From Blastocladiella emersonii ATCC 22665 (taxonomy: Eukaryota; Fungi; Blastocladiomycota), in assembly GCA_025594325.1 (NCBI GenBank), contig JANHCV010000006.1, forward strand, positions 1,302,001 through 1,366,000: 64,000 nucleotides of DNA, in the 5' to 3' direction. The notes under the pieces are model-generated. The model was given only the letters and a program-made list of their open reading frames with translations, made no database searches and was not told where the DNA came from. Shown in pieces: positions 28,468 to 43,094 of this stretch; position 1 is the first letter of the stretch; each line of letters opens with the position of its first letter. A program made the translations under genes and the position numbers.

Positions 28468-31400
28468 CTACTTGACAGCCTTCTCGGGAGCATCAAACGG
28501 CCCGCAGAAGTCGCCACTGCTGCCGTAGATGAGCGGGTTTGGCGACGCGCCCTCGCCCTGGTTGAGGAACCAGATCGGCGCCGGGAGGTAGTGGGCGAGG
28601 ACGAGGTAGGTGAAGAGCACAGCCACGCCGGTTCTACGCGACCGCGAGGACGGCGTCAGTGAACGAGCCCTTGGGCGGCAGTGAGAAGCGGGGAGCGTAC
28701 CCAACGTCGGCGGCGGAGGCAACCACGTAGTTGTACCGCGACCACTAATTGATGTGAAAACGGCCCGGGTGAGTCGGGCACAGAGACGGATGCGAGCGCG
28801 AGCGGCGTACCCAGTCCTGGCGGTACCGGTACATGAAGAACTGGAAGAACGCGGCGACGAGGAACGTGCTGAGCATGGTGCCCTACATTGCCAGTGGCCG
28901 ACGTCAGCGAACGGTGGTCGGCAAGCAATCGCACGCTCGCGATCTCTCGTACCTGGTTGCTGCCGACGCCAGGAACGAGGAACAACAGCGGACCCTGGAT
29001 GTACTTCCACGGGATCGGGCCGCCGAGGAACACGTCGGCGAGCTTGAAGATGATGGGCGTCACGGCGCCCGCCGCGAACCCGAGCGTGACGACGGGGCCG
29101 TACGCCGACTCGAAGAAGAAGCGCTTGGGTCCGATCGCGCCCCAGATGAGCGCCGCGTTGTAGCTACGAAAAGGCGCGTGTGCGAGGTTAGTGCTTGGTC
29201 AAGTACCGCGTCTAGGCGCGGCCGACGTACTAGATGTTCGGCATCGTGCCAGTCCAGAACCTAGCCGTCCCGTTCTCCTTCTTGAACTCTTCCTGGCGCA
29301 TGATCCAGTCTTGATGGACGGGGTTGTCGACCCACATCCGCATCGTCACGTAGCACACGCCGACGGCGATGATCTGGGCCGAGATCTGCGAGATGAAGAC
29401 GTGGCGCGGCGGACTACATGGTTGACGGTCGGGTAAAGAAGTCAGTTGATGGCCATGGCCATGGTCATGGCCAAAAACGCGTCGACGGCCAAGATTCGAG
29501 AGCGAATGTACATCTTCATGTAGTGACCGAGCTTGAGATCCATGAGCAGCGTGATGCACTGGTTGACGACGCTGTACGCGATCGCCTTGAACGTCATCAT
29601 GAGAATCGGGCGGCCGGGCGCGATCAGACTACGAAGCGCGCCGAGGGGGAAAGTGAGTTGACTCGCGCCGGACCACGGTACAGCAGAGAGACTTGGCGTA
29701 CCCAATGACGAGCTCGGCAGGAACGTTGATGCCCAGCTGAGTACCGGTCGTGGCGAGCACAATGGAGACGGGGACGACGCCGATAATCGCGACACCGACG
29801 GCCAGCAACGTCGCCCACCACTCGGAGTCGAAGGCGATCTGGCACACGAGCACGAGCAGAACCTAAAGGTACAGCGATGCCATGGTGAGTTCTTAATGAA
29901 GCGCGGATGCGACGCGCACCAGGAACGCGAAACGTACTCCGACCACGACGAACAGGAAAAAGTAGACCGTGTTGGGCACCTCGGGGTACTGGTCGATGAG
30001 CTGGCAGTGCACGTCGTCCTCCTCGATGTTGCGGCGCGAGTTACGGAGGCGGCGGACGATGTCGCGGCCGTACCACGCGATGACGTGCGAGATGGCCGCC
30101 GTGAACTGGGCGAGGATGGCAAAGTACGAAATTGCGAACAGCGGGGACATGTAGATCGGGGATTTGGCCTGGTACTCCTTCTCGTTGATTCGCAACGTCT
30201 GCTTGTCCACGTATTTGCGGGCAGAAAAACGGTCGCCGTTCTTGTCGATGAGGTGCGGCACGTTGAGGACGAGCTTGTCCTGCGGCTCGCCGAACCACCG
30301 CTGGTACTTGGCCATCGGGGCGACGACCCACTGCAGGACCACGCCGCCAAAGAACATCGAGGCCGATGCCCAAAACGGCGACGACATGGCGGCCGACCCA
30401 GAGATCACGGACCAGTCGAGCGAGAACGAGAGGAGACCGACGCCCTGCATCGGCGAGCCGAGCTCGTGCAACCATGTGCTCGTCTTGGGCGCGATGAAGC
30501 AGAGAAGCGGGATCGTGCCGGCGAGCGGCGCGAGGTAACCGGGGCCGGCGAGGTGGTACACGAACGCGAGGAACACGACCAGGAAAAAGACGCCGAGCTG
30601 CGACCAGTGCTTCTTGCCGTCGTTCTCGGTCGCCTTGGCCTCGAACCGGTGGAAGGCCGAGTACACGGACACGACGGGGAGCACGGTGGGCCAGATCATC
30701 TGGATTGGGCGGATCGTGAAGCGGCGGAGCGGGCCCGACAGCGCGAACCCGAGCAGCGACGTGGCGAACAGAAACGTGAGCGAGTAGAGCGGGTTCACGG
30801 TCATGTTGAAGAAGGTCTCCTGCACCACCAGGTTCTCGGTGCCGTACACGCCGGACGCGCCCGTCGAGCCGAAGATGCCGCTATGGAGGGGAGGGAGCGA
30901 TGTGAGATGGTGAATCGAGTAGTATGAGCGATCCGGCGTACATGAGGACGTGCTCCTTGACCGTGAACGGACCCGGGTTGGTGTCAAAAGTGGTTCCGAA
31001 CGCGCGCAGGCGGATGCTTGGCACGTAGCGCTCCATGAGCTTGCCGAGCGGGTAGGCGAGCAGGATTCCGACGTAGGAGCTGATGGCAAAGTAGTTGGTC
31101 CGAAACAGGAACAACTGGTTGAGCATGCCGAGCAGGACGCTGGAAGCAAGGGAAGTCGTGGCAGTTAGTTGTGATCAACGTGGATCCGAACGTTGAGCAC
31201 GGACCAGAAGAAGGTGCCGAGGATCCAGACGCGGAACGTGAGCGAGGGCGTCTCGGGATGCTACAGGGACGATCTGATCAGTTCCTTGATCATGAGCGAC
31301 GCGTCCCGATCAAGAGCGCGTACGTCGGTGGTCGGCACAATATCCTGGACGACGCGCTCAAAGTCCTCGTCGACAATGAACCCGGACTTGGTGCTGTCGT

Positions 31401-32622
31401 GGGCGGCGGCGGCGGCGATCTCGGCGAGACCAGCCTGGCGCAGGTCCGAGAACTTGCCTTTGGTCGGCTTGTACTGCTCCGTCTCGTCGCGCGTGCGGCT
31501 GTAGCTCTCGTAGATGTTGTAGAGCTCGGACGAGTTCTCGGCCGTGTTGAGGCGCGGCCGGCCGTGTCCGTCGTCGAACGAGCGGCCGCTCGACCCGCGC
31601 CCGCCCGCACCCAGTCCGAGGTGCTGCTGCTGGTACTGCTGGTTGAAATACTCGCGCTGGTACTGGCCCTGCTGCTGCTGCTGCTGCTGCGGCTGCGGCT
31701 GCAACGACGACATGACCGAGGAAACGCCCGAGTACGCCGGCGGCGTCGACGGCTCGGCGCGCGCGCGGCCCGTGTCGGCGGGCTGGTGGCCGGCGTAGAA
31801 GTAGCCGACGTTGGGCTGCACCGAGTTCGGCGACGGCGGCGCTTGCTGCTGCAGCAGCTGCGAGCGAGGCGGCGACGAGCTCATCCAGCCGGGCGACTGC
31901 GCGCCGGCGTACGTCGGCGAGACGGGCGATCGGGGCTGCTGCGCGGTCGGCGACGGCGGACCAGCCGCAGCGGCGAACCCAGGACGCGGCGGCATGGCGA
32001 GCGACTGCGCCGGCGGCGCGTTCGCGGTCCGCGTCGCGCTGGGCGAGCGGTACACGTTCGGGCCCCCGAAGCCGGGACTGCGCAGATCCGCGGGCGGTGC
32101 GGGCGCGATACCCGTCGGCGCGGCCGAGGGTGGCGGCGGGACGCGCGGCTGCGAGCCGGACACGCTGCTGCCGGCGCGCGAGGCGGTCGACACGGCCGAT
32201 CCGGGCGCGGCCGTGGCGTTGAAGGTGTAGCCCGTGCCGTAGGTGCGCTGGGCGTTGACAGTCGAGTACGTGTTGCTCGCGGCGGAGACGGCCGAGCTGG
32301 GCCCACGCCGCCCGCCGTTCTGGAACGCGGGCCGGTTGGGGGTGGCGTAGTCGTCCTCGTCGCTGCTGTCCGTGAGGTTGGACCCCGGGTACTGCCACGC
32401 GGGCTGCGGCTTGCGCGGCGGCGTCGGATGCTGCTCCTGCGCGGGCCGAGCAGTCGACGACGAGGACACGGCCGAGGCCGCCGGCGGCACGTGGTCGACC
32501 GTGACGTTCTTGCGCGACGTTGACGAGGTGCGGCGGGGCGGACCGCCGACGCGATTGCCAGCAGTCGCGTCGCCGCGCGGATCGGACCCGCTCATCGACG
32601 TGTAGTAGCTGAGTTCCGACAT
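28468..32622 (-). CDS. OPT-family oligopeptide transporter with long low-complexity N-terminal extension, multiple introns
   Basis: Splicing joins DIVPTTD to HPETPSLTFRVWILG. Other OPT motifs: NPGPFTVKEHVL, PIQMIWPTVLP, LSFSLDWSVI, YSPLFAISY, YPEVP, DLKLGHYMK, GAIGPKRFF, YFHGIGPPRN. Confidence 0.85.
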
Positions 32623-33210
32623 AAGAGCGGTGCGCGCGCGACGGAGTGGGTGGCGCTGATGTGGCGTTGATCTGGAACGAGGCGCGTCGTTGGACCGCCG
32701 CAGGTCCCGAGCGCTGAGACGGAGAGGATGGCCAAGAGAGGAGCCCGAGGTGAGCTGGCGGGCGGGCGGAAGCTTTTGAGGTCCGCGGAGGTCGACGAGA
32801 AGAAGCGCGGTCGCGAAGAAGCGGCGCCACAGCTGCACGTCGGCTGCGTTTGCACAGAGTCTGCCGCTTCACCGTCGCATCGAGCGGCATGGGCCCGCTT
32901 CAGCCACACACGCGCGAGCATGGGCCGCTCGCTCGGCTGCTCGCCTGACTCGTTTGACTCGCGCGGTGTTTACGGACGGGAGTCGGAGATCGGCGGCAGT
33001 TCTCCTCCTCGCAGTCGATGCCCGCATGACCGTGCATTCTGCCGTGATCATGCCCCGCTCGTTGGATAACCGCATCGCAGTCTGCTGACCGCTTCTCCTC
33101 ACCAATGACCGGCGCGTGGTGGCGCCCCTCACGCGGTTGATTGAAGCCAGAAGCGGGTGGAAATTGCAAGCGATCAACGTCGGATTAAACCGGAGTCGAC
33201 ATCGCAGTTC

Positions 33211-33477
33211 GTCGCCAAGCTGTGCGCGTACCACGCGCTGTCGCAGCAGCCGGGCGCCAACGAGGCCAAGCGCGCGCTCAAGGCGTACGGGCTCGACCTG
33301 ATCAAGGGCGAGATCCGCGACAACATGAAGGCCGGTGTCCTCGAGCCCGCCATGTCCAAGATCAAGTCGCTCAAGGCCGCCACCGAGGCCGCCATCTCGA
33401 TCCTCCGCATCGACGACATGATCAAGCTCACCCCAGCACAGCAGCAGGGCCAGGACCCACATGACGAGCTGCACTAA
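33211..33477 (+). pseudogene. Inverted, 5'-truncated copy of the last 88 codons plus stop of CCT1
   Basis: 266/267 nt identical to the reverse complement of 35751-36017, with a single synonymous CGC/CGT difference. Upstream sequence does not continue as CCT1. Confidence 0.92.
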
Positions 33478-33816
33478 ACTGTGCTCGAACGCGCGGTCGG
33501 TCGGTCGGTTGGTCGTCGCGTAGTTCTAGTGCCTCCTCCTCGCATCGCTTGTCGTCGCTGACTCTTCCTTCAGTCACCGCTTTCAAGGGTCAGGAACACG
33601 GACGAGTGCGAGTGGTGAGCGAGTCACACAACGAAGAAGAGTCACGTTCAGTTCCGCAACTTCTCGAGCGCGAAAACGTTGGAAGCGAGCGGGGACAGAT
33701 TCACAAACTGTCCAAGGCGCCAACTTGAACCAGCGTGGTGCGTCCGTGCGGAGAAGGAGACGCGCGATCACAGCTCCGATCACGCGCCACGTGGGTGGCG
33801 GTGGCTCAGCTGGCCG
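33478..33816 (+). repeat. Diverged non-coding continuation of the inverted repeat (partner about 35222-35750)
   Basis: Shared blocks: TCGCGTAGyTsTAGTG…CCTCGCATC.CTTGT; perfect 24-mer CGCGATCACAGCTCCGATCACGCG (33763-33786 vs 35251-35274); 17-mer GGTGGCTCAGCTGGCCG (33800-33816 vs 35222-35238). Confidence 0.85.
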
Positions 33817-34432
33817 ACTTTCCGCCGCATATGCGTCTCATCAAACCGCTGCCAGCGCACTGCGGCAACAGTCGTGCGAAGATTAATAATGTGCATGTTG
33901 CCTAGGCCAACTGACTTGACTGTTCAATGCGCTGTAAACGACTTGCGCGGCTCCAGCCTGCCCCGCTACAAAACAGCCGCGACCGCCGACCAACCGTGCT
34001 TGTCCTCCCAAGCTCGTCCGCATCCCTTGACCGTGAAAGCAAGAAATGAGCACCACTAAACAGCTTTTCAACAAAAATGTATGCTCGCGCAGGACATCAA
34101 TGCCACTGTGATCGATACGATCGGAAGGGACTCAAGCGAGAGCCTATTCTCATTTACTGCCAGTTCGAGGGAACGGATCGTTATCTATGCGTCTCAACTG
34201 ATCCTGAAAGTGATGCGTGTACGTCCACGCGATGCGTCATCATCAAAAACCGCCGGGTATATTTCATTTTTGCTACTGATAGGCGTAACGCAAGACAATA
34301 GGATAGCGATAGGCCTCCGCCACGTCTTCGTGTAATGAAAGTGGCCGCGCTTCGCCAGGTCCTGCTGGAAAGGCTCGCTATCTGGGAGGTACCGCAGCGC
34401 GAGAGCGTCGATCCGCACTCTCCCAGCGCGCG

Positions 34433-35053
34433 CTAGGACGCGTGCGTGGGGCCAGTCGCAACTCGGAACTTGGGTACCATCGTCACACCCAACCCAATGA
34501 ATTTGCCAACGTAAGCAATAAGCTTCAGGACGCTGCAAGTGCCGGCCAACCACAGGAAGGCCATGAACACTGACGAAGAGGTGATGCAGCCAAACATCCC
34601 CACCAATAAGACGATGACACCAGTGAAGTACAAAGTGGTTCCGAGGGAATCGACCCATGATGGAACCTCACGGGAGGATACTTCCGAGGCCGCGGTCGCA
34701 CGGCGGCTTGGGCTTTTCGGCAGCAATCTACGAGTCGAGCAGGCGAGTTCAGTTTCAATTGAGCTGTCGCTGTTGGTTGCTCACGTACCGCACGTGCTAG
34801 GTTCGTGTTCGCGAGGTGCGGCCTCAACTGGAATGACAATCGCACCATCTCTTGCAGGCGAATTCATTCCTGACTTGTGTTCGCCTGCAGCCGCATTCAT
34901 GGGATGCAGAAACGCTGGGGGCCATGACATCCTGCTCAACGCTGTATGTCGGCGGCGGCATGCACTCAAAGCACCGACACCCAACTGGGTGCACAATGCT
35001 ATCGGCCTGGACGCGGGCAAGGTAGGGTTTACGAACGGTGAGCGAACGAACAA
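34433..35053 (-). CDS. Putative small spliced membrane-protein gene or pseudogene inside the inverted-repeat spacer
   Basis: Host-style intron GTACGT…CTGAAC…TAG at about 34730-34788 and a hydrophobic exon (TLYFTGVIVLLVGMFGCITSSSVFMAFLWLAG…). Simple splicing does not land in the hydrophobic frame. Confidence 0.25.
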
Positions 35054-35750
35054 GTCCTGAGGCTAATGGGAGTCGAGGCAGTCAGCACGTACCGACGAGG
35101 TAATTTTAGTGGACATGTTCAATTTGAGCGTTAAAATGTTGATTGCTCTTGCAGAGGAGAGCGGGAGCGGTCGCCAGCGACTCACTGACTGGATTGGTGA
35201 GATGTCGAGCGAGTGCGCTTGCGGCCAGCTGAGCCACCCGTGTGGCGCAACGCGTGATCGGAGCTGTGATCGCGTGCCTCCTCTTCCATCCGCCGATGCG
35301 AAGTGTGCACGTTTAGTTGTCCTTGTCGCATCGCTTCCGAATCAGCGCTTGTGGGTCACCATCGTTCACTTCTCAGACAGTTTCGAGGTTCGCGGAATCC
35401 TTGCGTGCCCTGCATCTCGCTCAACGCGAGCTTCGCAGCTGCCCGAACCTGTTTGCCACCGATACTCAGCGCACGTTTCGTCCACGGCCGTACGGCCAGG
35501 CTCATGCCCAGGGTTGTGAGGTGATCTCCATCATCCGCGCGCGACAACGTTGCAAGCGCAATGATGCGAGTCCGTCAATACGGCTCAACTGCGCGCGACA
35601 AGAAGGTTGATACAAATCGATTTCTTCAAGTACAATTGCAATGCAAACATTCAAAAACGGTGGGGAGGAGAGGGTAGAAGAATCACAAGTGATGCGAGGT
35701 GGAGGGGACACTACAGCTACGCGAACAGCAACGACACTGTCCAAGCGCAC

Positions 35751-37490
35751 TTAGTGCAGCTCGTCATGTGGGTCCTGGCCCTGCTGCTGTGCTGGGGTGA
35801 GCTTGATCATGTCGTCGATGCGGAGGATCGAGATGGCGGCCTCGGTGGCGGCCTTGAGCGACTTGATCTTGGACATGGCGGGCTCGAGGACACCGGCCTT
35901 CATGTTGTCGCGGATCTCGCCCTTGATCAGGTCGAGCCCGTACGCCTTGAGCGCACGCTTGGCCTCGTTGGCGCCCGGCTGCTGCGACAGCGCGTGGTAC
36001 GCGCACAGCTTGGCGACCAGGTCCGTCGAGTCCTTGGCCGCGTTGACGGCGAGCTGCTTGGGGATCACCAGGAGCGCCTGGGCAAACTCGGCAATGGCGA
36101 GCTGCTCGCGCGTCGACAGCGTGGTGGCAAAGTTCTCGAGGTAAATGGAGAGCGCCGACTCGACGGCGCCGCCGCCGGGGACGACCGCGCCCGACTCGAG
36201 CGTGCGCTTGACGACGCACAGCGAGTCGTGCAGGGACCGCTCCATCTCGTCGAGCATGTAGTCGTTGGCGCCGCGCAGGATGATGGAGGCGGCCGACTGG
36301 GCCTTGCACCCGCGCACGATGATGCACTCGTCGTCCGAGATGCGCTCCTGGGTGACCGACTCGGCGGACCCGAGGTAGCTGGCCTCGAACGTCTCCTCGC
36401 CCTCGAGGTTGGCGAGCGTGGACAGGAGCGTGGCGCCCGTGGCCTTGGCGATGCGCTTCATGTCCTCCTTGGCGACGCGGCGGACGGCCATGGCGCCGCG
36501 CTCGACGAAATACTTGAGGCACATGTCGTCGATGCCCTTGGTGGTGAGCACCACGTTGGCGCCGGCGGCGAGGATCTTCTCGATGCGCTCGGCGGTGATG
36601 TCGGCCTCGCGCTTGCGGATGGCCTCGAGCTGCGACGGGTCGTCGATGACGACGTGGACGCCGAGGTGCATGCGGGCCTTCATGAGGTTGATGTCGAGGC
36701 ACGCAATCTTGGCGCCGGTGACCTTGGTGGGCATGGCCTGCGACGCGATGGTGCAGTTGAGGGCGTAGCCGTTGATGAAGAGCGACTCCTTGGACGACTT
36801 GCCGTGGGCCTTGAGGATGTTGACGGCCTTGACGGGGTACTTGGTCTCCCCCCTCGCGTTGGTGTTCTTGACGGTGAGCATGGCGTCGACGACCATCTTG
36901 GAGAAGAAGTCGTCCTCGGGGCCAATGATCTTGGACGACATGGAGGTCTTGGCGGCGTTGATGAGGCAGTCGCGGCCGAGCGTGTCGACCTGGGTGGACA
37001 GCTGCTCGATGATGTACTTGCACGCCTCCTTGACGGCGAGGCGGAAGCCCGTGATGATGGTGGTCGGGTGGATGCGGTTCTTGATCAGCTCGTTGGCGAG
37101 CTTGAGCAGCTCGGCGGCCACGATCACGACCGAGGTGGTGCCGTCGCCCACCTCTTTGTCCTGCTGCTGGGCGAGCTCGACCAGCACCTTGGCGGCCGGG
37201 TGCTCGACCTCGAGCAGGCGCAGGATGGTGGCGCCGTCGTTGGAGATGGTCACGTCGCCAATGTCGTCGACGAGCATCTTGTCGAGGCCGACGGGGCCGA
37301 GCGACGTCTTGACGATGTTGGCGACCGAGCACGCGGCGAGCACTATACGTAAGGGGTGGGGGTGGGGAGTGAGCACGCGTCGTCGCGAGTGGGCGTGAGA
37401 GGGCGGCGTACCGTTCTGGGCGCGCACATCCTGACCGCTGGTGCGCTCACCGCCGATGCTGAGGGCCGTGGTCTGGTCCTTGGGGGCCAT
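35751..37490 (-). CDS. CCT1: Chaperonin CCT/TRiC alpha subunit, intron 37343-37411
   Basis: [92 protein letters not shown]. Confidence 0.97.
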
Positions 37491-39231: not shown

Positions 39232-39432
39232 GGTGTTGCAGCAGTGTGGTTCAGTTTACATGGGCAGCCAGCGGCTGTTGAGGGGAGAGCGATCGGAGAG
39301 GAGAGGGTCGGCTCGAGGCGCAGCGCCACTACGCCGGGCCGAAGCCGGCGACCACGGCCATGGCGTCACTGAACCGAGCGACCACCGACGAGAATGGAGA
39401 CTAAGAGACACGTATATACCAACAAACCGAGC

Positions 39433-42400
39433 TCAGCCAAACGTCTGGCTGACGCGCCCGTAGCGCTTCTGCTTGGACAGGCGCCACGAGTCCTTTTCCT
39501 CGTACTTGTTGTAGAGGGGCTCGACCTTCTCCTTGAGCTTGCGCTTAGACATGTGGGCGGGGTTAGCGACGCGGAAGAAGTTGGGCGCGACCTCGGCGAG
39601 CCACTTGCCCTCGATGGCCGTGACCTCGCGCATGTACTCCTTGGTGGTCATGACGAGCTCGTGGTAGATGACCCACTCGGGGTTCTTGTTGAAGAGCGCC
39701 GAGCTCGGGTGGATGTAGACGGGCGTTCCCTCGACGAGCGTCTTGTACCCCTCCTGCGGGTCCTTTTTCGCCGCGTGCGCAAAGAACCCGGAGCAGATGG
39801 CCTTGCGGACGACCGAGTAGTTGCGCCCGCAGCTGATCACGTCCTGGCGGTACCGGTCCATGATCCCGACCATCTGCTTGCGCACGTCGAGCGCGCGCTT
39901 CATGGTGCGCGCCTGGATGTAGTTGTCGTAGCACCACGGGTTCGAGAAGTTGCTCGCCTTCCACGCGTTGTAGACCGTCAGCAGCGTGAGGTGGTCGCCC
40001 TCGGGCTGGTTGAACCGCGCCTTCTTCTGGTCGGCCACCTGCTGCTTGTCCTTGGGCCGGAAGAAGACGTTCTGCACCGACAGCATCGCCACGATCGTCA
40101 AAATCTCCTCGGAGCACTTGAGGTCGACCGACAGCAGCAGCATCTTGGCGAGCGGCGGCTCGAGCGGGAACTCGGCCATCTTGCGCCCGATGCGCGTGAG
40201 CAGGCCCTCGCTGTCGAGCGCCGACAGCGCGTACAGGTTCTCGAGCGCCGTGATGAGCGTCTGCGCGGGCGGCGGGTCCATGAAGTCGAAGTGGATCAGG
40301 TCGTTGATCCCCATGGCCTTGAGCTTGAGCACGGTGCCCGCGAGGTTGGTCCGCTGGATCTCGGGCACCGTGTTGGGCAGCATCTCGTTGCGGTACGCCG
40401 ACTCCGTGTACAGGCGGTAGCACTTGCCCGGGCCCGTCCGCCCGGCGCGACCCGCACGCTGCCGCGCCTGCGCCTGCGAGATGGGCACGACGATGAGCGA
40501 GTCCATGCCGAGCTTCGGGTCGTACGCGTTCTGCTTGACGAACCCGGGGTCGACCACGTAGAAGATGCCGTCGATGGTGAGCGAGGTCTCGGCGATGTTG
40601 GTCGCGATCACCACCTTGCGGCTGCCGGGCGGCGCCGGGTCGAAGATGCGCGACTGCATCTCGGACGGCAGCGCAGAGTACACGGGCAGCACGATCAGCT
40701 CGGGCACCTGCGGGCCGAGCGCCTTCATGCGCTCGAACAGCGTCTCGGCGGCGTTGTCGATCTCCTCCTGGCCCGTCAGGAACAGCAGGATGTCGCCGGG
40801 CGGCTCCTGGATGTGGATCTGCATGATGGCCGTGAGCGACGCCTCGAGGTAGTCGGACTCGGGCTCCTTGGTGTACAGGATCTCGACGGGGAACGTGCGC
40901 CCGGGGATCGTGAAGATCGGGCACGAGTAGAAGTACGACGAGAACTTGTCGGCGTCGAGCGTGGCCGACGTCACGATGATCTTGAGGTCGGGCCGCGCCT
41001 GCACCGTCTTCTTGAGCAGCCCGAACAGCACGTCCGTGTTGACGGTGCGCTCGTGGGCCTCGTCGAGCACGATCACCGAGTACTTGGTCATGTCCTGGTC
41101 GTCGAGGCACTCGCGCAGCAGCATACCCTCGGTCATGTACTTGATCTTGGTGGCCGGCGACGTGCAGTCCTCGAATCGGATCGTGTACCCGACCTCGTCG
41201 CCGAGCGCGCACCCGACCTCCTCGGCGACACGCTTCGCGACCGACATGGCGGCGACACGGCGCGGCTGCGTGCACCCGATCATACCGGAGCGCGCAAACC
41301 CCTCCTCGAGCAGGTACTGGGTCATCTGGGTCGTCTTGCCGGACCCCGTGTCGCCGACGACGATGAGGATCTGGTTGTCGCGGACGGCCTGGACGAGGTC
41401 GTCGCGCAGCTTGAAGACGGGGAGCGACCGGCGCTGCTCGGTGATGGACATGCTGGTGATCTTGCCGAGCGTGCCCGAGTTGAGGTACGCCTTCTTCCAC
41501 TCGGGCATGACGGGCGCGCCCTGCTGCCCACCGCGCTGCCCGACACTGCCGAACCGGTCGGCGGCGCCCGCGACGCCCGCGGCCATGGCGCGCATCGGGT
41601 CGTCCCACGCCTGGCCCTCCTCGTTGCGCTTGGCCGCCTCCTCCTCGGCCTGCTGCTGGCGCAGCTCGCGGCGCAGCTTGGCCTGCTCGACGCTGGCGAC
41701 GGCGGCCCGGTTGAGCGACCCGTCGGGCGCCTTGACGATCTTGACGGGCGACAGCTGTATCGTGAGCTTAGTCTGCCCGCGCAGGAACTGCGGCTCCTCC
41801 TCGCGGATCTCAATGTCGACGTCCTCCTCGGGGTCGTGCTGGACCGCGCGCCCGGGCTGGTCCTGCTCGGCGTCAAAGTCGGGGTACTCGCGCGGGTCGA
41901 GCACGCCCGCCGCCATGAGCTGCTTGAGCTCGAACCGCTCGGCCGACGACAGGCGTTTCGCGGAGCGGAAGTTGGACGCGGAGCCCGTTGCCGGCGCACC
42001 ACCACCAGCGGGCCCGTCGAACTGCTCGCGGAACCGCTTCCGGGCGCGCCCGCGCTCCTCCTCCTCCTCGAGCTCGCGCTGGGTCTTGACGCGCAGGTGC
42101 GGGGTGAGGTCGGCGCCCGTTTTTTGATCGACGTCCTTCATGGACAGGGAGATGCGCGATGCGCCGATCGACATGACCTTGACCCAGACGGGCTGGTTCT
42201 TCCTGACGAGCTCGGCCGGGTCGGCGATGCGGGCGTTGCTCAGCATGCTGATGTGCACCATGCCCTCGATCGACCCGCGCACGCCGTCGAGCTGCACGAA
42301 CACGCCAAAGTCGCGCACGTTGAGCGCGCGCCCGCGGTAGATCTTGTACTGCACGGGCGCGTCGTCGATGCTCGGGGACCGGCGGCGTCTATATGCGGTT

Positions 42401-43094
42401 TGAGGGAGGGTGTGAGCGATGGGACGGGTACGGGTAGGGTTGAAAGTGAGGCGTACTTGTTGCCGCGCTCCGAATCGCGGTCGCCAAACCGTCCACGGTC
42501 CTGGTCGCGGCCGTTTCCGTATCCGCGGTCGCGGTCGTACCCGCGGGGCGGCGAGCGCGACCGGCGGCGCGAGCGCGGCGACCGCGAGCGGGATCGAGAC
42601 CGACGGCGGCGGTGGTCGTCGTCATCGCCTCTCCTTGCCGGCGGCGCAGCACGCGGGTCACGCGCGCGAGCCTCCATGGCACGGAGCACGTCGTCGACCT
42701 CGTCCTCCTCGACAACGGCGTCGAGGTCCGCGGCGCGCTTGGAGCGCCACGCGCTGTCGTTGGCCATGGCGAGGCCGGGGAATTTGGCTGCGTCGAGTGC
42801 GGGGCGGCCGCCGACGGGTTTGGCGAGGGCGGCGGCGGCGCGCTGCTTCTTGTAGGTCGGGTTGAGGGCGTTGATGAGGCGCGACAGCGAGTCGATGAGG
42901 GCGTCCGAGAAGCCGGCGCTGGCGTCGTCGAGCAGGCGCTTGAACTCGGCGCGGCTGCCTTTCGACTCCTCGTGCAGCGCGATGATGAACTCGGCCAGGT
43001 CCTTGTCCGACATGGCCAGGTGGTTGGCCAGCTCCGTCTCGACCTTGGACACGAGCGCTAGCTTCTCGAGCTCCTCGAGGTCCTTGCTGCTCAT
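39433..43094 (-). CDS. PRP22: Spliceosomal DEAH helicase Prp22/DHX8 with S1 domain, 1 intron at about 42357-42454
   Basis: [17 protein letters not shown]-rich segment, S1 domain (FGVFVQL…GMVHIS), [39 protein letters not shown]-terminus. Confidence 0.96.

Follow-up and report, generated by a model that had tools for sequence, protein, structure and literature searches.

A nearly identical inverted copy of the CCT1 3' coding end within an older, diverged duplication in Blastocladiella emersonii, probably overwritten from CCT1 by gene conversion

We examined a stretch of 64,000 nt from the genome of the fungus Blastocladiella emersonii ATCC 22665 (assembly GCA_025594325.1, contig JANHCV010000006.1, positions 1,302,001 to 1,366,000 of the forward strand; referred to below as the window, with coordinates counted from its first letter), in which the 3' coding end of CCT1, the gene for the TCP-1 alpha chaperonin subunit, reappears in inverted orientation downstream of the gene. 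The best reading of this locus, which we hold to be probable, though well short of certain, is that of an old partial inverted duplicate whose coding part has lately been overwritten from CCT1 by gene conversion. The strong contrast in identity between the coding arms and the DNA duplicated along with them was read directly from the alignments; that conversion produced this contrast, the direction in which it would have run, and the cause of its limits are deduced from the one sequence.

The two arms of the repeat (arm A, the copy, and arm B, the end of CCT1; Table 1) are each 267 nt long and are complementary at 266 positions, as determined with a repeat finder and by direct comparison. The only mismatch, at 33274, is synonymous, with CGC in the copy and CGT in CCT1, both coding for Arg. 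Translation of arm A on the plus strand gives the final 88 residues of CCT1 followed by a stop codon. These results confirm the original prediction of a 267 nt inverted copy of the CCT1 end with one synonymous difference. The arms are spaced 2273 nt apart and form the sole long inverted pair detected by the repeat finder between 31000 and 38500; self-BLAST of the window with a 16 nt word returned the arm pair as the single repeat. The whole structure (both arms and the middle) covers 2.8 kb and is positioned mid-window. The parent gene is assigned as CCT1 from its full-length Cpn60_TCP1 domain and from its top database matches, which are CCT1/TCP-1 alpha orthologues; the protein is 93% identical to that of Catenaria anguillulae and 87% identical to those of both B. 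britannica and Allomyces macrogynus. The gene comprises exon 1 (37490-37412) and exon 2 (37342-35751, including the stop), encoding a product of 556 aa, with a 69 nt in-frame intron (37411-37343, GT..AG) near the 5' end that was read from the sequence.

Table 1. Coordinates of the inverted arms, their flanks and the neighbouring features, numbered from the first letter of the window
Feature	Coordinates	Strand	Remarks
Arm A, inverted copy of CCT1 3' coding end	33211..33477	+	Pfam Cpn60_TCP1 C-terminus, E 1.5e-13
Arm B, last 88 codons and stop of CCT1	35751..36017	-	presumed conversion donor
Proximal flank block, copy	33508..33552	+	homologous to 35685-35732
Proximal flank block, genuine CCT1 3' flank	35685..35732	-	homologous to 33508-33552
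Distal flank block, copy	33750..33816	+	homologous to 35222-35287; 24-mer at 33763-33786
Distal flank block, CCT1 side	35222..35287	-	24-mer at 35251-35274
CCT1 (TCP-1 alpha chaperonin subunit)	35751..37490	-	Pfam Cpn60_TCP1, E 8e-163
Cleavage/polyadenylation-type motif cluster	35611..35715	-	UGUA x3, T5, AAUGUU; 35-140 nt past CCT1 stop
Unique central spacer (1405 nt)	33817..35221	.	lower GC, ~0.49-0.59; no convincing gene
OPT oligopeptide transporter, downstream neighbour	28980..32622	-	start codon read at 32622; lower limit approximate

Beyond the stop codons, homology was found in two pairs of short blocks. The proximal blocks (33508-33552 compared with 35732-35685) are identical at 38 of 45 positions with one 3 nt gap, and their local alignment scored 26, against 8.6 +/- 1.4 for shuffled sequences; the distal blocks (33750-33816 compared with 35287-35222) are identical at 53 of 66 positions and scored 37, against 8.5 +/- 1.4. 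Neither score was reached by any of 1000 shuffles. Since the blocks are individually significant, and collinear with the arm, we conclude that arm and flank were duplicated together. Directly after the stop codons the first 30 nt of the copy and the first 18 nt of the gene could not be aligned, and the DNA between the blocks (197 nt for the copy versus 397 nt on the gene side) aligned no better than shuffles; the ~200 nt indel that had been claimed is therefore non-homologous DNA of unequal length. The original prediction, which extended the duplication through 33478-33816 versus about 35222-35750, was thus right in that the homology is real, but what persists is limited to the two short blocks and is not a simple matter of a ~200 nt indel. 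A processed pseudogene was considered and rejected, as the homology extends to ~340 nt past the stop on the copy side and ~530 nt on the gene side, well beyond the cluster of cleavage/polyadenylation-type motifs behind CCT1, and there is no A-run after 33816.

Two further features of the flanks were noted. The distal blocks share a perfect 24-mer, in which a GATCAC direct repeat stands between CGCG and GCG, and which was absent elsewhere in the window even when 3 mismatches were allowed; it might serve as a binding site for a protein or belong to a transposon end. Close behind the stop of the copy lies a (GGTC)n-like microsatellite (33492-33512, plus strand), which marks the collapse of arm identity and has no counterpart behind CCT1. 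At the left edge, the identity of the arms breaks off abruptly at 33211. A match of 8/9 at 33192-33200, 11 nt further out, was not significant, so that the duplication most plausibly ends at 33211; this also led us to discard the view of a converted tract that is internal on its left side.

The contrast in divergence between the arms and the adjoining blocks is far greater than one event would allow. Mismatches number 1/267 in the arms compared with 24/129, plus gaps, in the flank blocks (Fisher p = 8e-12). The 88 codons provide ~61 synonymous sites, where ~11 differences are expected at the flank rate and 1 was seen (Poisson P ~1e-4); this test errs on the side of caution, since the count took in no more than the best-preserved parts of the flank. 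The tract identity is significantly above that of the adjoining co-duplicated sequence, as expected for a converted tract. The GC content at third codon positions (GC3) of CCT1 is 0.97, compared with a GC content of ~55-60% in the non-coding DNA around it, and a neutral fragment would not keep CCT1-type codons without being recopied. One duplication followed by uniform decay is excluded, in full agreement with the earlier argument that a single duplication cannot explain the pattern whereas homogenisation can.

The events at the locus may be pictured as follows. DNA covering the CCT1 3' end and part of its downstream flank would have been copied long ago and inverted, in an initial duplication of ~0.6-0.8 kb that was perhaps mosaic from the outset, as from template-switching repair. 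The copy, a presumptive promoter-less gene fragment, would have come to rest in the CCT1-OPT intergenic region, ~1.4 kb further downstream, probably in the lineage of this fungus. The non-coding part would then have decayed, giving the ~16-20% substitutions in the alignable blocks, with the remainder replaced or made unalignable; whereas the 267 nt coding part would recently have been overwritten via non-reciprocal homologous recombination (gene conversion) with CCT1. The likely effective donor is CCT1, being essential and highly codon-biased: selection would purge indels and amino-acid changes copied into CCT1, while changes in the fragment would simply be erased. The conversion tract would end at the stop because unalignable DNA begins there, with heterology, including the microsatellite-like run, blocking heteroduplex extension; its limit on the other side would be set because the duplication itself ends there. 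A crossover between the arms would flip the 2.3 kb middle, which we regard as a passive and probably harmful by-product and not as a switch.

Several points weigh against overwriting by gene conversion. Identity gives way to non-homology precisely at the stop codon, a boundary neater than a random conversion tract would leave, and one that might point to the copy being under selection as coding sequence. The data come from one genome only, and neither conversion nor its direction is directly observed in it. A second, recent event of templated repair would give the same pattern. The flank blocks, one of which holds the perfect 24-mer, could have been kept by selection and would then not be leftovers. 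Lastly, Pilon short-read polishing of the assembly could have erased a few true differences between the arms, although it is unable to create identity.

The first of these points bears upon a further reading: a separate gene on the plus strand, possibly a chimeric one, might use the copy as its last coding exon, and selection on both copies in addition to conversion would then account for identity ending right at the coding limits. A CAG is situated 3 nt before arm A (33205-33207), no stop codon interrupts the frame back to 33157, and, as described, identity stops exactly at the stop codon. But there is no in-frame ATG upstream of the arm, only a GTG at 33157, and the 54 nt extension has a GC3 of 0.50. 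The nearest upstream open reading frame (ORF) on the plus strand (32728-33069) has a GC3 of 0.67 and is Arg-rich and noise-like, compared with 0.84-0.97 for real genes, and only ~590 nt are available between the copy and the OPT start codon on the opposite strand. We consider a separate gene to be highly improbable.

The flank blocks were also considered as two unrelated layers. By this account the 67 nt distal blocks are the terminal inverted repeats of a ~1.5 kb non-autonomous DNA transposon (33750-35287), and merely ~340 nt (the arm and the proximal block) were duplicated, perhaps via a transposon-associated rearrangement. There is no detectable homology in the sequence between the proximal and distal blocks, and the distal blocks face inward in the manner of terminal inverted repeats and include the perfect 24-mer; a possible 4 nt direct repeat, TCCG, was seen just outside them, although a 4 nt match is weak evidence. 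However, no other copy of such an element was present in the window, and no transposase or coding signal was found. The proximal block is still much more diverged than the arm, so that conversion would be needed anyway. We judge the two-layer origin unlikely.

Could the identity of the arms have arisen during assembly, either through a chimeric join or because the arms were made artificially alike? The assembly of ATCC 22665 consists of 21 contigs prepared from PacBio HiFi reads (mean 10.5 kb; SRR19593111), and was purged of haplotigs and polished with Pilon using 65 nt Illumina reads (PMC9730499); such polishing can blur differences between paralogous sequences. But both arms have unique, mutually diverged flanks, which is unlike fold-back read artefacts, and the structure sits in the middle of the window. 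Polishing is likewise unable to make a copy that is ~20% diverged identical. The 2.8 kb structure is well below the mean HiFi read length (PMC9730499), and this, together with the unique diverged flanks, makes the haplotype-chimera artefact allowed for by the original prediction an unlikely one; for artefacts of assembly or polishing as a whole, we regard the chance as very slight.

We compared the 3' flanks of the gene and the copy by counting motifs, which is not a functional assay. The CCT1 flank carries five motifs of the cleavage/polyadenylation type within 140 nt of the stop, and the flanks of 4/4 orthologues carry T-run, UGUA or AAUGUU motifs; whereas UGUA, the T-run and AAUGUU were all absent in the 400 nt after the stop of the copy. 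The copy flank, having none of the 3'-end motifs, is therefore unlike a maintained alternative 3' untranslated region (3'UTR), for which processing signals in both flanks would be expected and were found in one. These counts bear upon the suggestion that the locus is a functional flip-flop, in which crossover between the arms inverts the 2.3 kb middle at a useful frequency and provides CCT1 with either of two 3'UTR/terminator regions. The arms are inverted, almost identical and 267 nt long, a length of near-identity which suffices for homologous recombination in fungi, and the protein is the same in either orientation. Programmed switches have a recombinase in or beside the segment; none was detected among the spacer ORFs, as assessed from Pfam matches and GC3, and the spacer showed no other gene. 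The flanks are also unconserved in relatives, and the structure is absent from the four relatives described below. The invertible switch envisaged earlier thus stands in so far as crossover would invert the middle and leave the protein unchanged, but the absence of a recombinase from the spacer ORFs and of 3'-end motifs from the copy flank argues against a switch, and to judge from these flanks the inverted allele might well be harmful to CCT1. We find a functional flip-flop most improbable.

The spacer itself offered little coding potential. No spacer ORF had a Pfam domain or resembled a recombinase (no Pfam match below E 0.06), and none had a coding signature, the top GC3 being 0.69 in comparison with 0.84 for OPT and 0.97 for CCT1. 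An ORF of 97 aa (34433-34726, minus strand, GC3 0.69) has two hydrophobic stretches and a very weak tetraspanin match (E 0.067, far short of the Pfam cut-off), and is probably not a gene. A search of 32600-36100 for Rfam families and tRNAs found none.

The arms do have the geometry of a hairpin-type locus, in that they derive from the would-be target gene and are in inverted orientation, and the locus might be a source of regulatory RNA in which double-stranded RNA (dsRNA) or small RNAs tune chaperonin dosage. In one version, CCT1 read-through transcription would give a hairpin with a 267 bp stem; in the other, an OPT transcript starting upstream of the copy would carry 267 nt antisense to the CCT1 mRNA. 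The minus strand carries both CCT1 and OPT and is, at 33211-33477, antisense to CCT1, and the copy lies ~590 nt upstream of the OPT start codon and points away from OPT. Selection for perfect complementarity could, moreover, add to conversion in preserving the identity of the arms. The first version requires 2.3 kb of read-through beyond a normal-looking 3' end, and the second an unusually long OPT leader; self-tail silencing of an essential, highly expressed gene brings no obvious benefit. The CCT1 3' flank showed no special RNA structure (z-score +0.5). In a Dicer survey which included two Blastocladiomycota proteomes, the phylum was placed both among clades with Dicers and among those having Dicer-lacking species (PMC12663654). 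We hold a source of regulatory RNA at this locus to be very unlikely. Taking in any use of the copy that would keep it identical, be it minus-strand dsRNA or antisense RNA coupling chaperonin dosage to another signal, or flipping of the spacer, we still put the chance as low; if true, a used copy would mean that an essential housekeeping gene of an early-diverging fungus is set up, unusually, to target itself.

The original prediction had proposed a comparison of the locus with relatives. We examined CCT1 with up to 10 kb on each side in Catenaria anguillulae (L001), B. britannica (L002), Allomyces macrogynus (L003) and Paraphysoderma sedebokerense (L004). A second CCT1 C-terminus (the 88 residues) was absent within +/-10 kb of CCT1 in all 4 of these relatives, which makes it probable, as far as these loci can tell, that this lineage alone has the partial duplicate. 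The CCT1 3' flank, the copy flank and the spacer showed no conservation in Catenaria or B. britannica. In Catenaria the gene order on one strand is CCT1, dCMP deaminase, three lipases and the OPT transporter; in the window CCT1 is followed directly by OPT on the same strand, and this OPT gene is orthologous to that of Catenaria (L001:18563-21851). The copy is thus located within an otherwise syntenic CCT1-to-OPT interval, the order being common to Catenaria, and this interval of only 3.1 kb holds both the spacer and the copy. The dCMP deaminase and the three lipases have left no detectable remnants in 32600-35800 (tblastx, best E 0.08), and these genes are absent from the whole of the window. 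Blastocladiella is paraphyletic as a genus (PMC9730499), which fits with the CCT1 protein being nearer to that of Catenaria than to that of B. britannica.

The locus belongs with known inverted repeats that are maintained by conversion. Arm-to-arm conversion occurs in palindromes and inverted repeats such as those of the human Y chromosome and of plastids. As in those repeats, the inverted copies here are near-identical while the sequence outside diverges, and crossover can passively flip the middle; they differ in that their arms measure kilobases to megabases, compared with 267 nt here, and in that here a fragment is paired with the functional end of an essential gene, with the converting tract being part of an older, decayed duplication. 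Concerted evolution confined to coding DNA, with diverged untranslated regions and introns, is seen in paralogous ribosomal-protein and translation-factor genes of yeasts. In both cases identity spans the coding DNA including synonymous sites and ends at the coding boundary, and the outcome is biased because a highly expressed gene is under purifying selection; but unlike the yeast pairs, one partner here is a whole gene and the other lacks a start codon, a 5' part and any evidence of a promoter.

Other inverted arrangements provide less close parallels. Hairpin-RNA and proto-microRNA loci arise from inverted duplication, as with the Drosophila hpRNAs and young plant MIRNA genes, and partial inverted repeats of ARR17 act in poplar sex determination. 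The CCT1 copy resembles these in being an inverted partial gene copy which lies near the gene and could pair with the gene's own sequence. However, both arms of such loci are in one dedicated transcription unit with documented small RNAs, whereas here the 3' end of the gene itself serves as one arm, a loop of 2.3 kb would result, and the arrangement is known from sequence alone. Shufflons, the Hin/Gin systems and FLP/FRT of the yeast 2-micron plasmid likewise have a DNA segment between inverted repeats; but here no recombinase gene and no short dedicated recombination sites were found, the arms consist of ordinary gene sequence, and inversion would alter nothing but a 3' flank.

If overwriting by gene conversion is accepted as the probable origin of the arm identity, the locus represents a compact, clean case of conversion acting on a very short tract, of 267 nt, inside an older decayed inverted duplication, with an essential, strongly codon-biased gene as one of the partners. 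It would then serve as a natural lower-bound example of how little homology is still enough for conversion in a blastoclad fungus. Detection of both orientations in long reads, or of dsRNA from the arms, would raise the importance of the locus, though nothing found here points in that direction.

Some minor observations were made on the neighbouring genes and the loci of the relatives. The OPT gene has a long low-complexity N-terminal region rich in S, P and Q (~31400-32622). An ORF of 1153 aa upstream of CCT1 (39394-42855, plus strand) has no Pfam domain at E 0.001. In Catenaria and B. britannica a GARS/AIRS purine-synthesis gene is arranged head-to-head with CCT1, and is not at that position in the window. 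The Allomyces locus carries two pairs of direct repeats near CCT1 (L003, 4857-5594/14763-15500 and 4013-4740/8088-8816), which are 730-740 nt long, 99.9-100% identical, and unrelated to CCT1.

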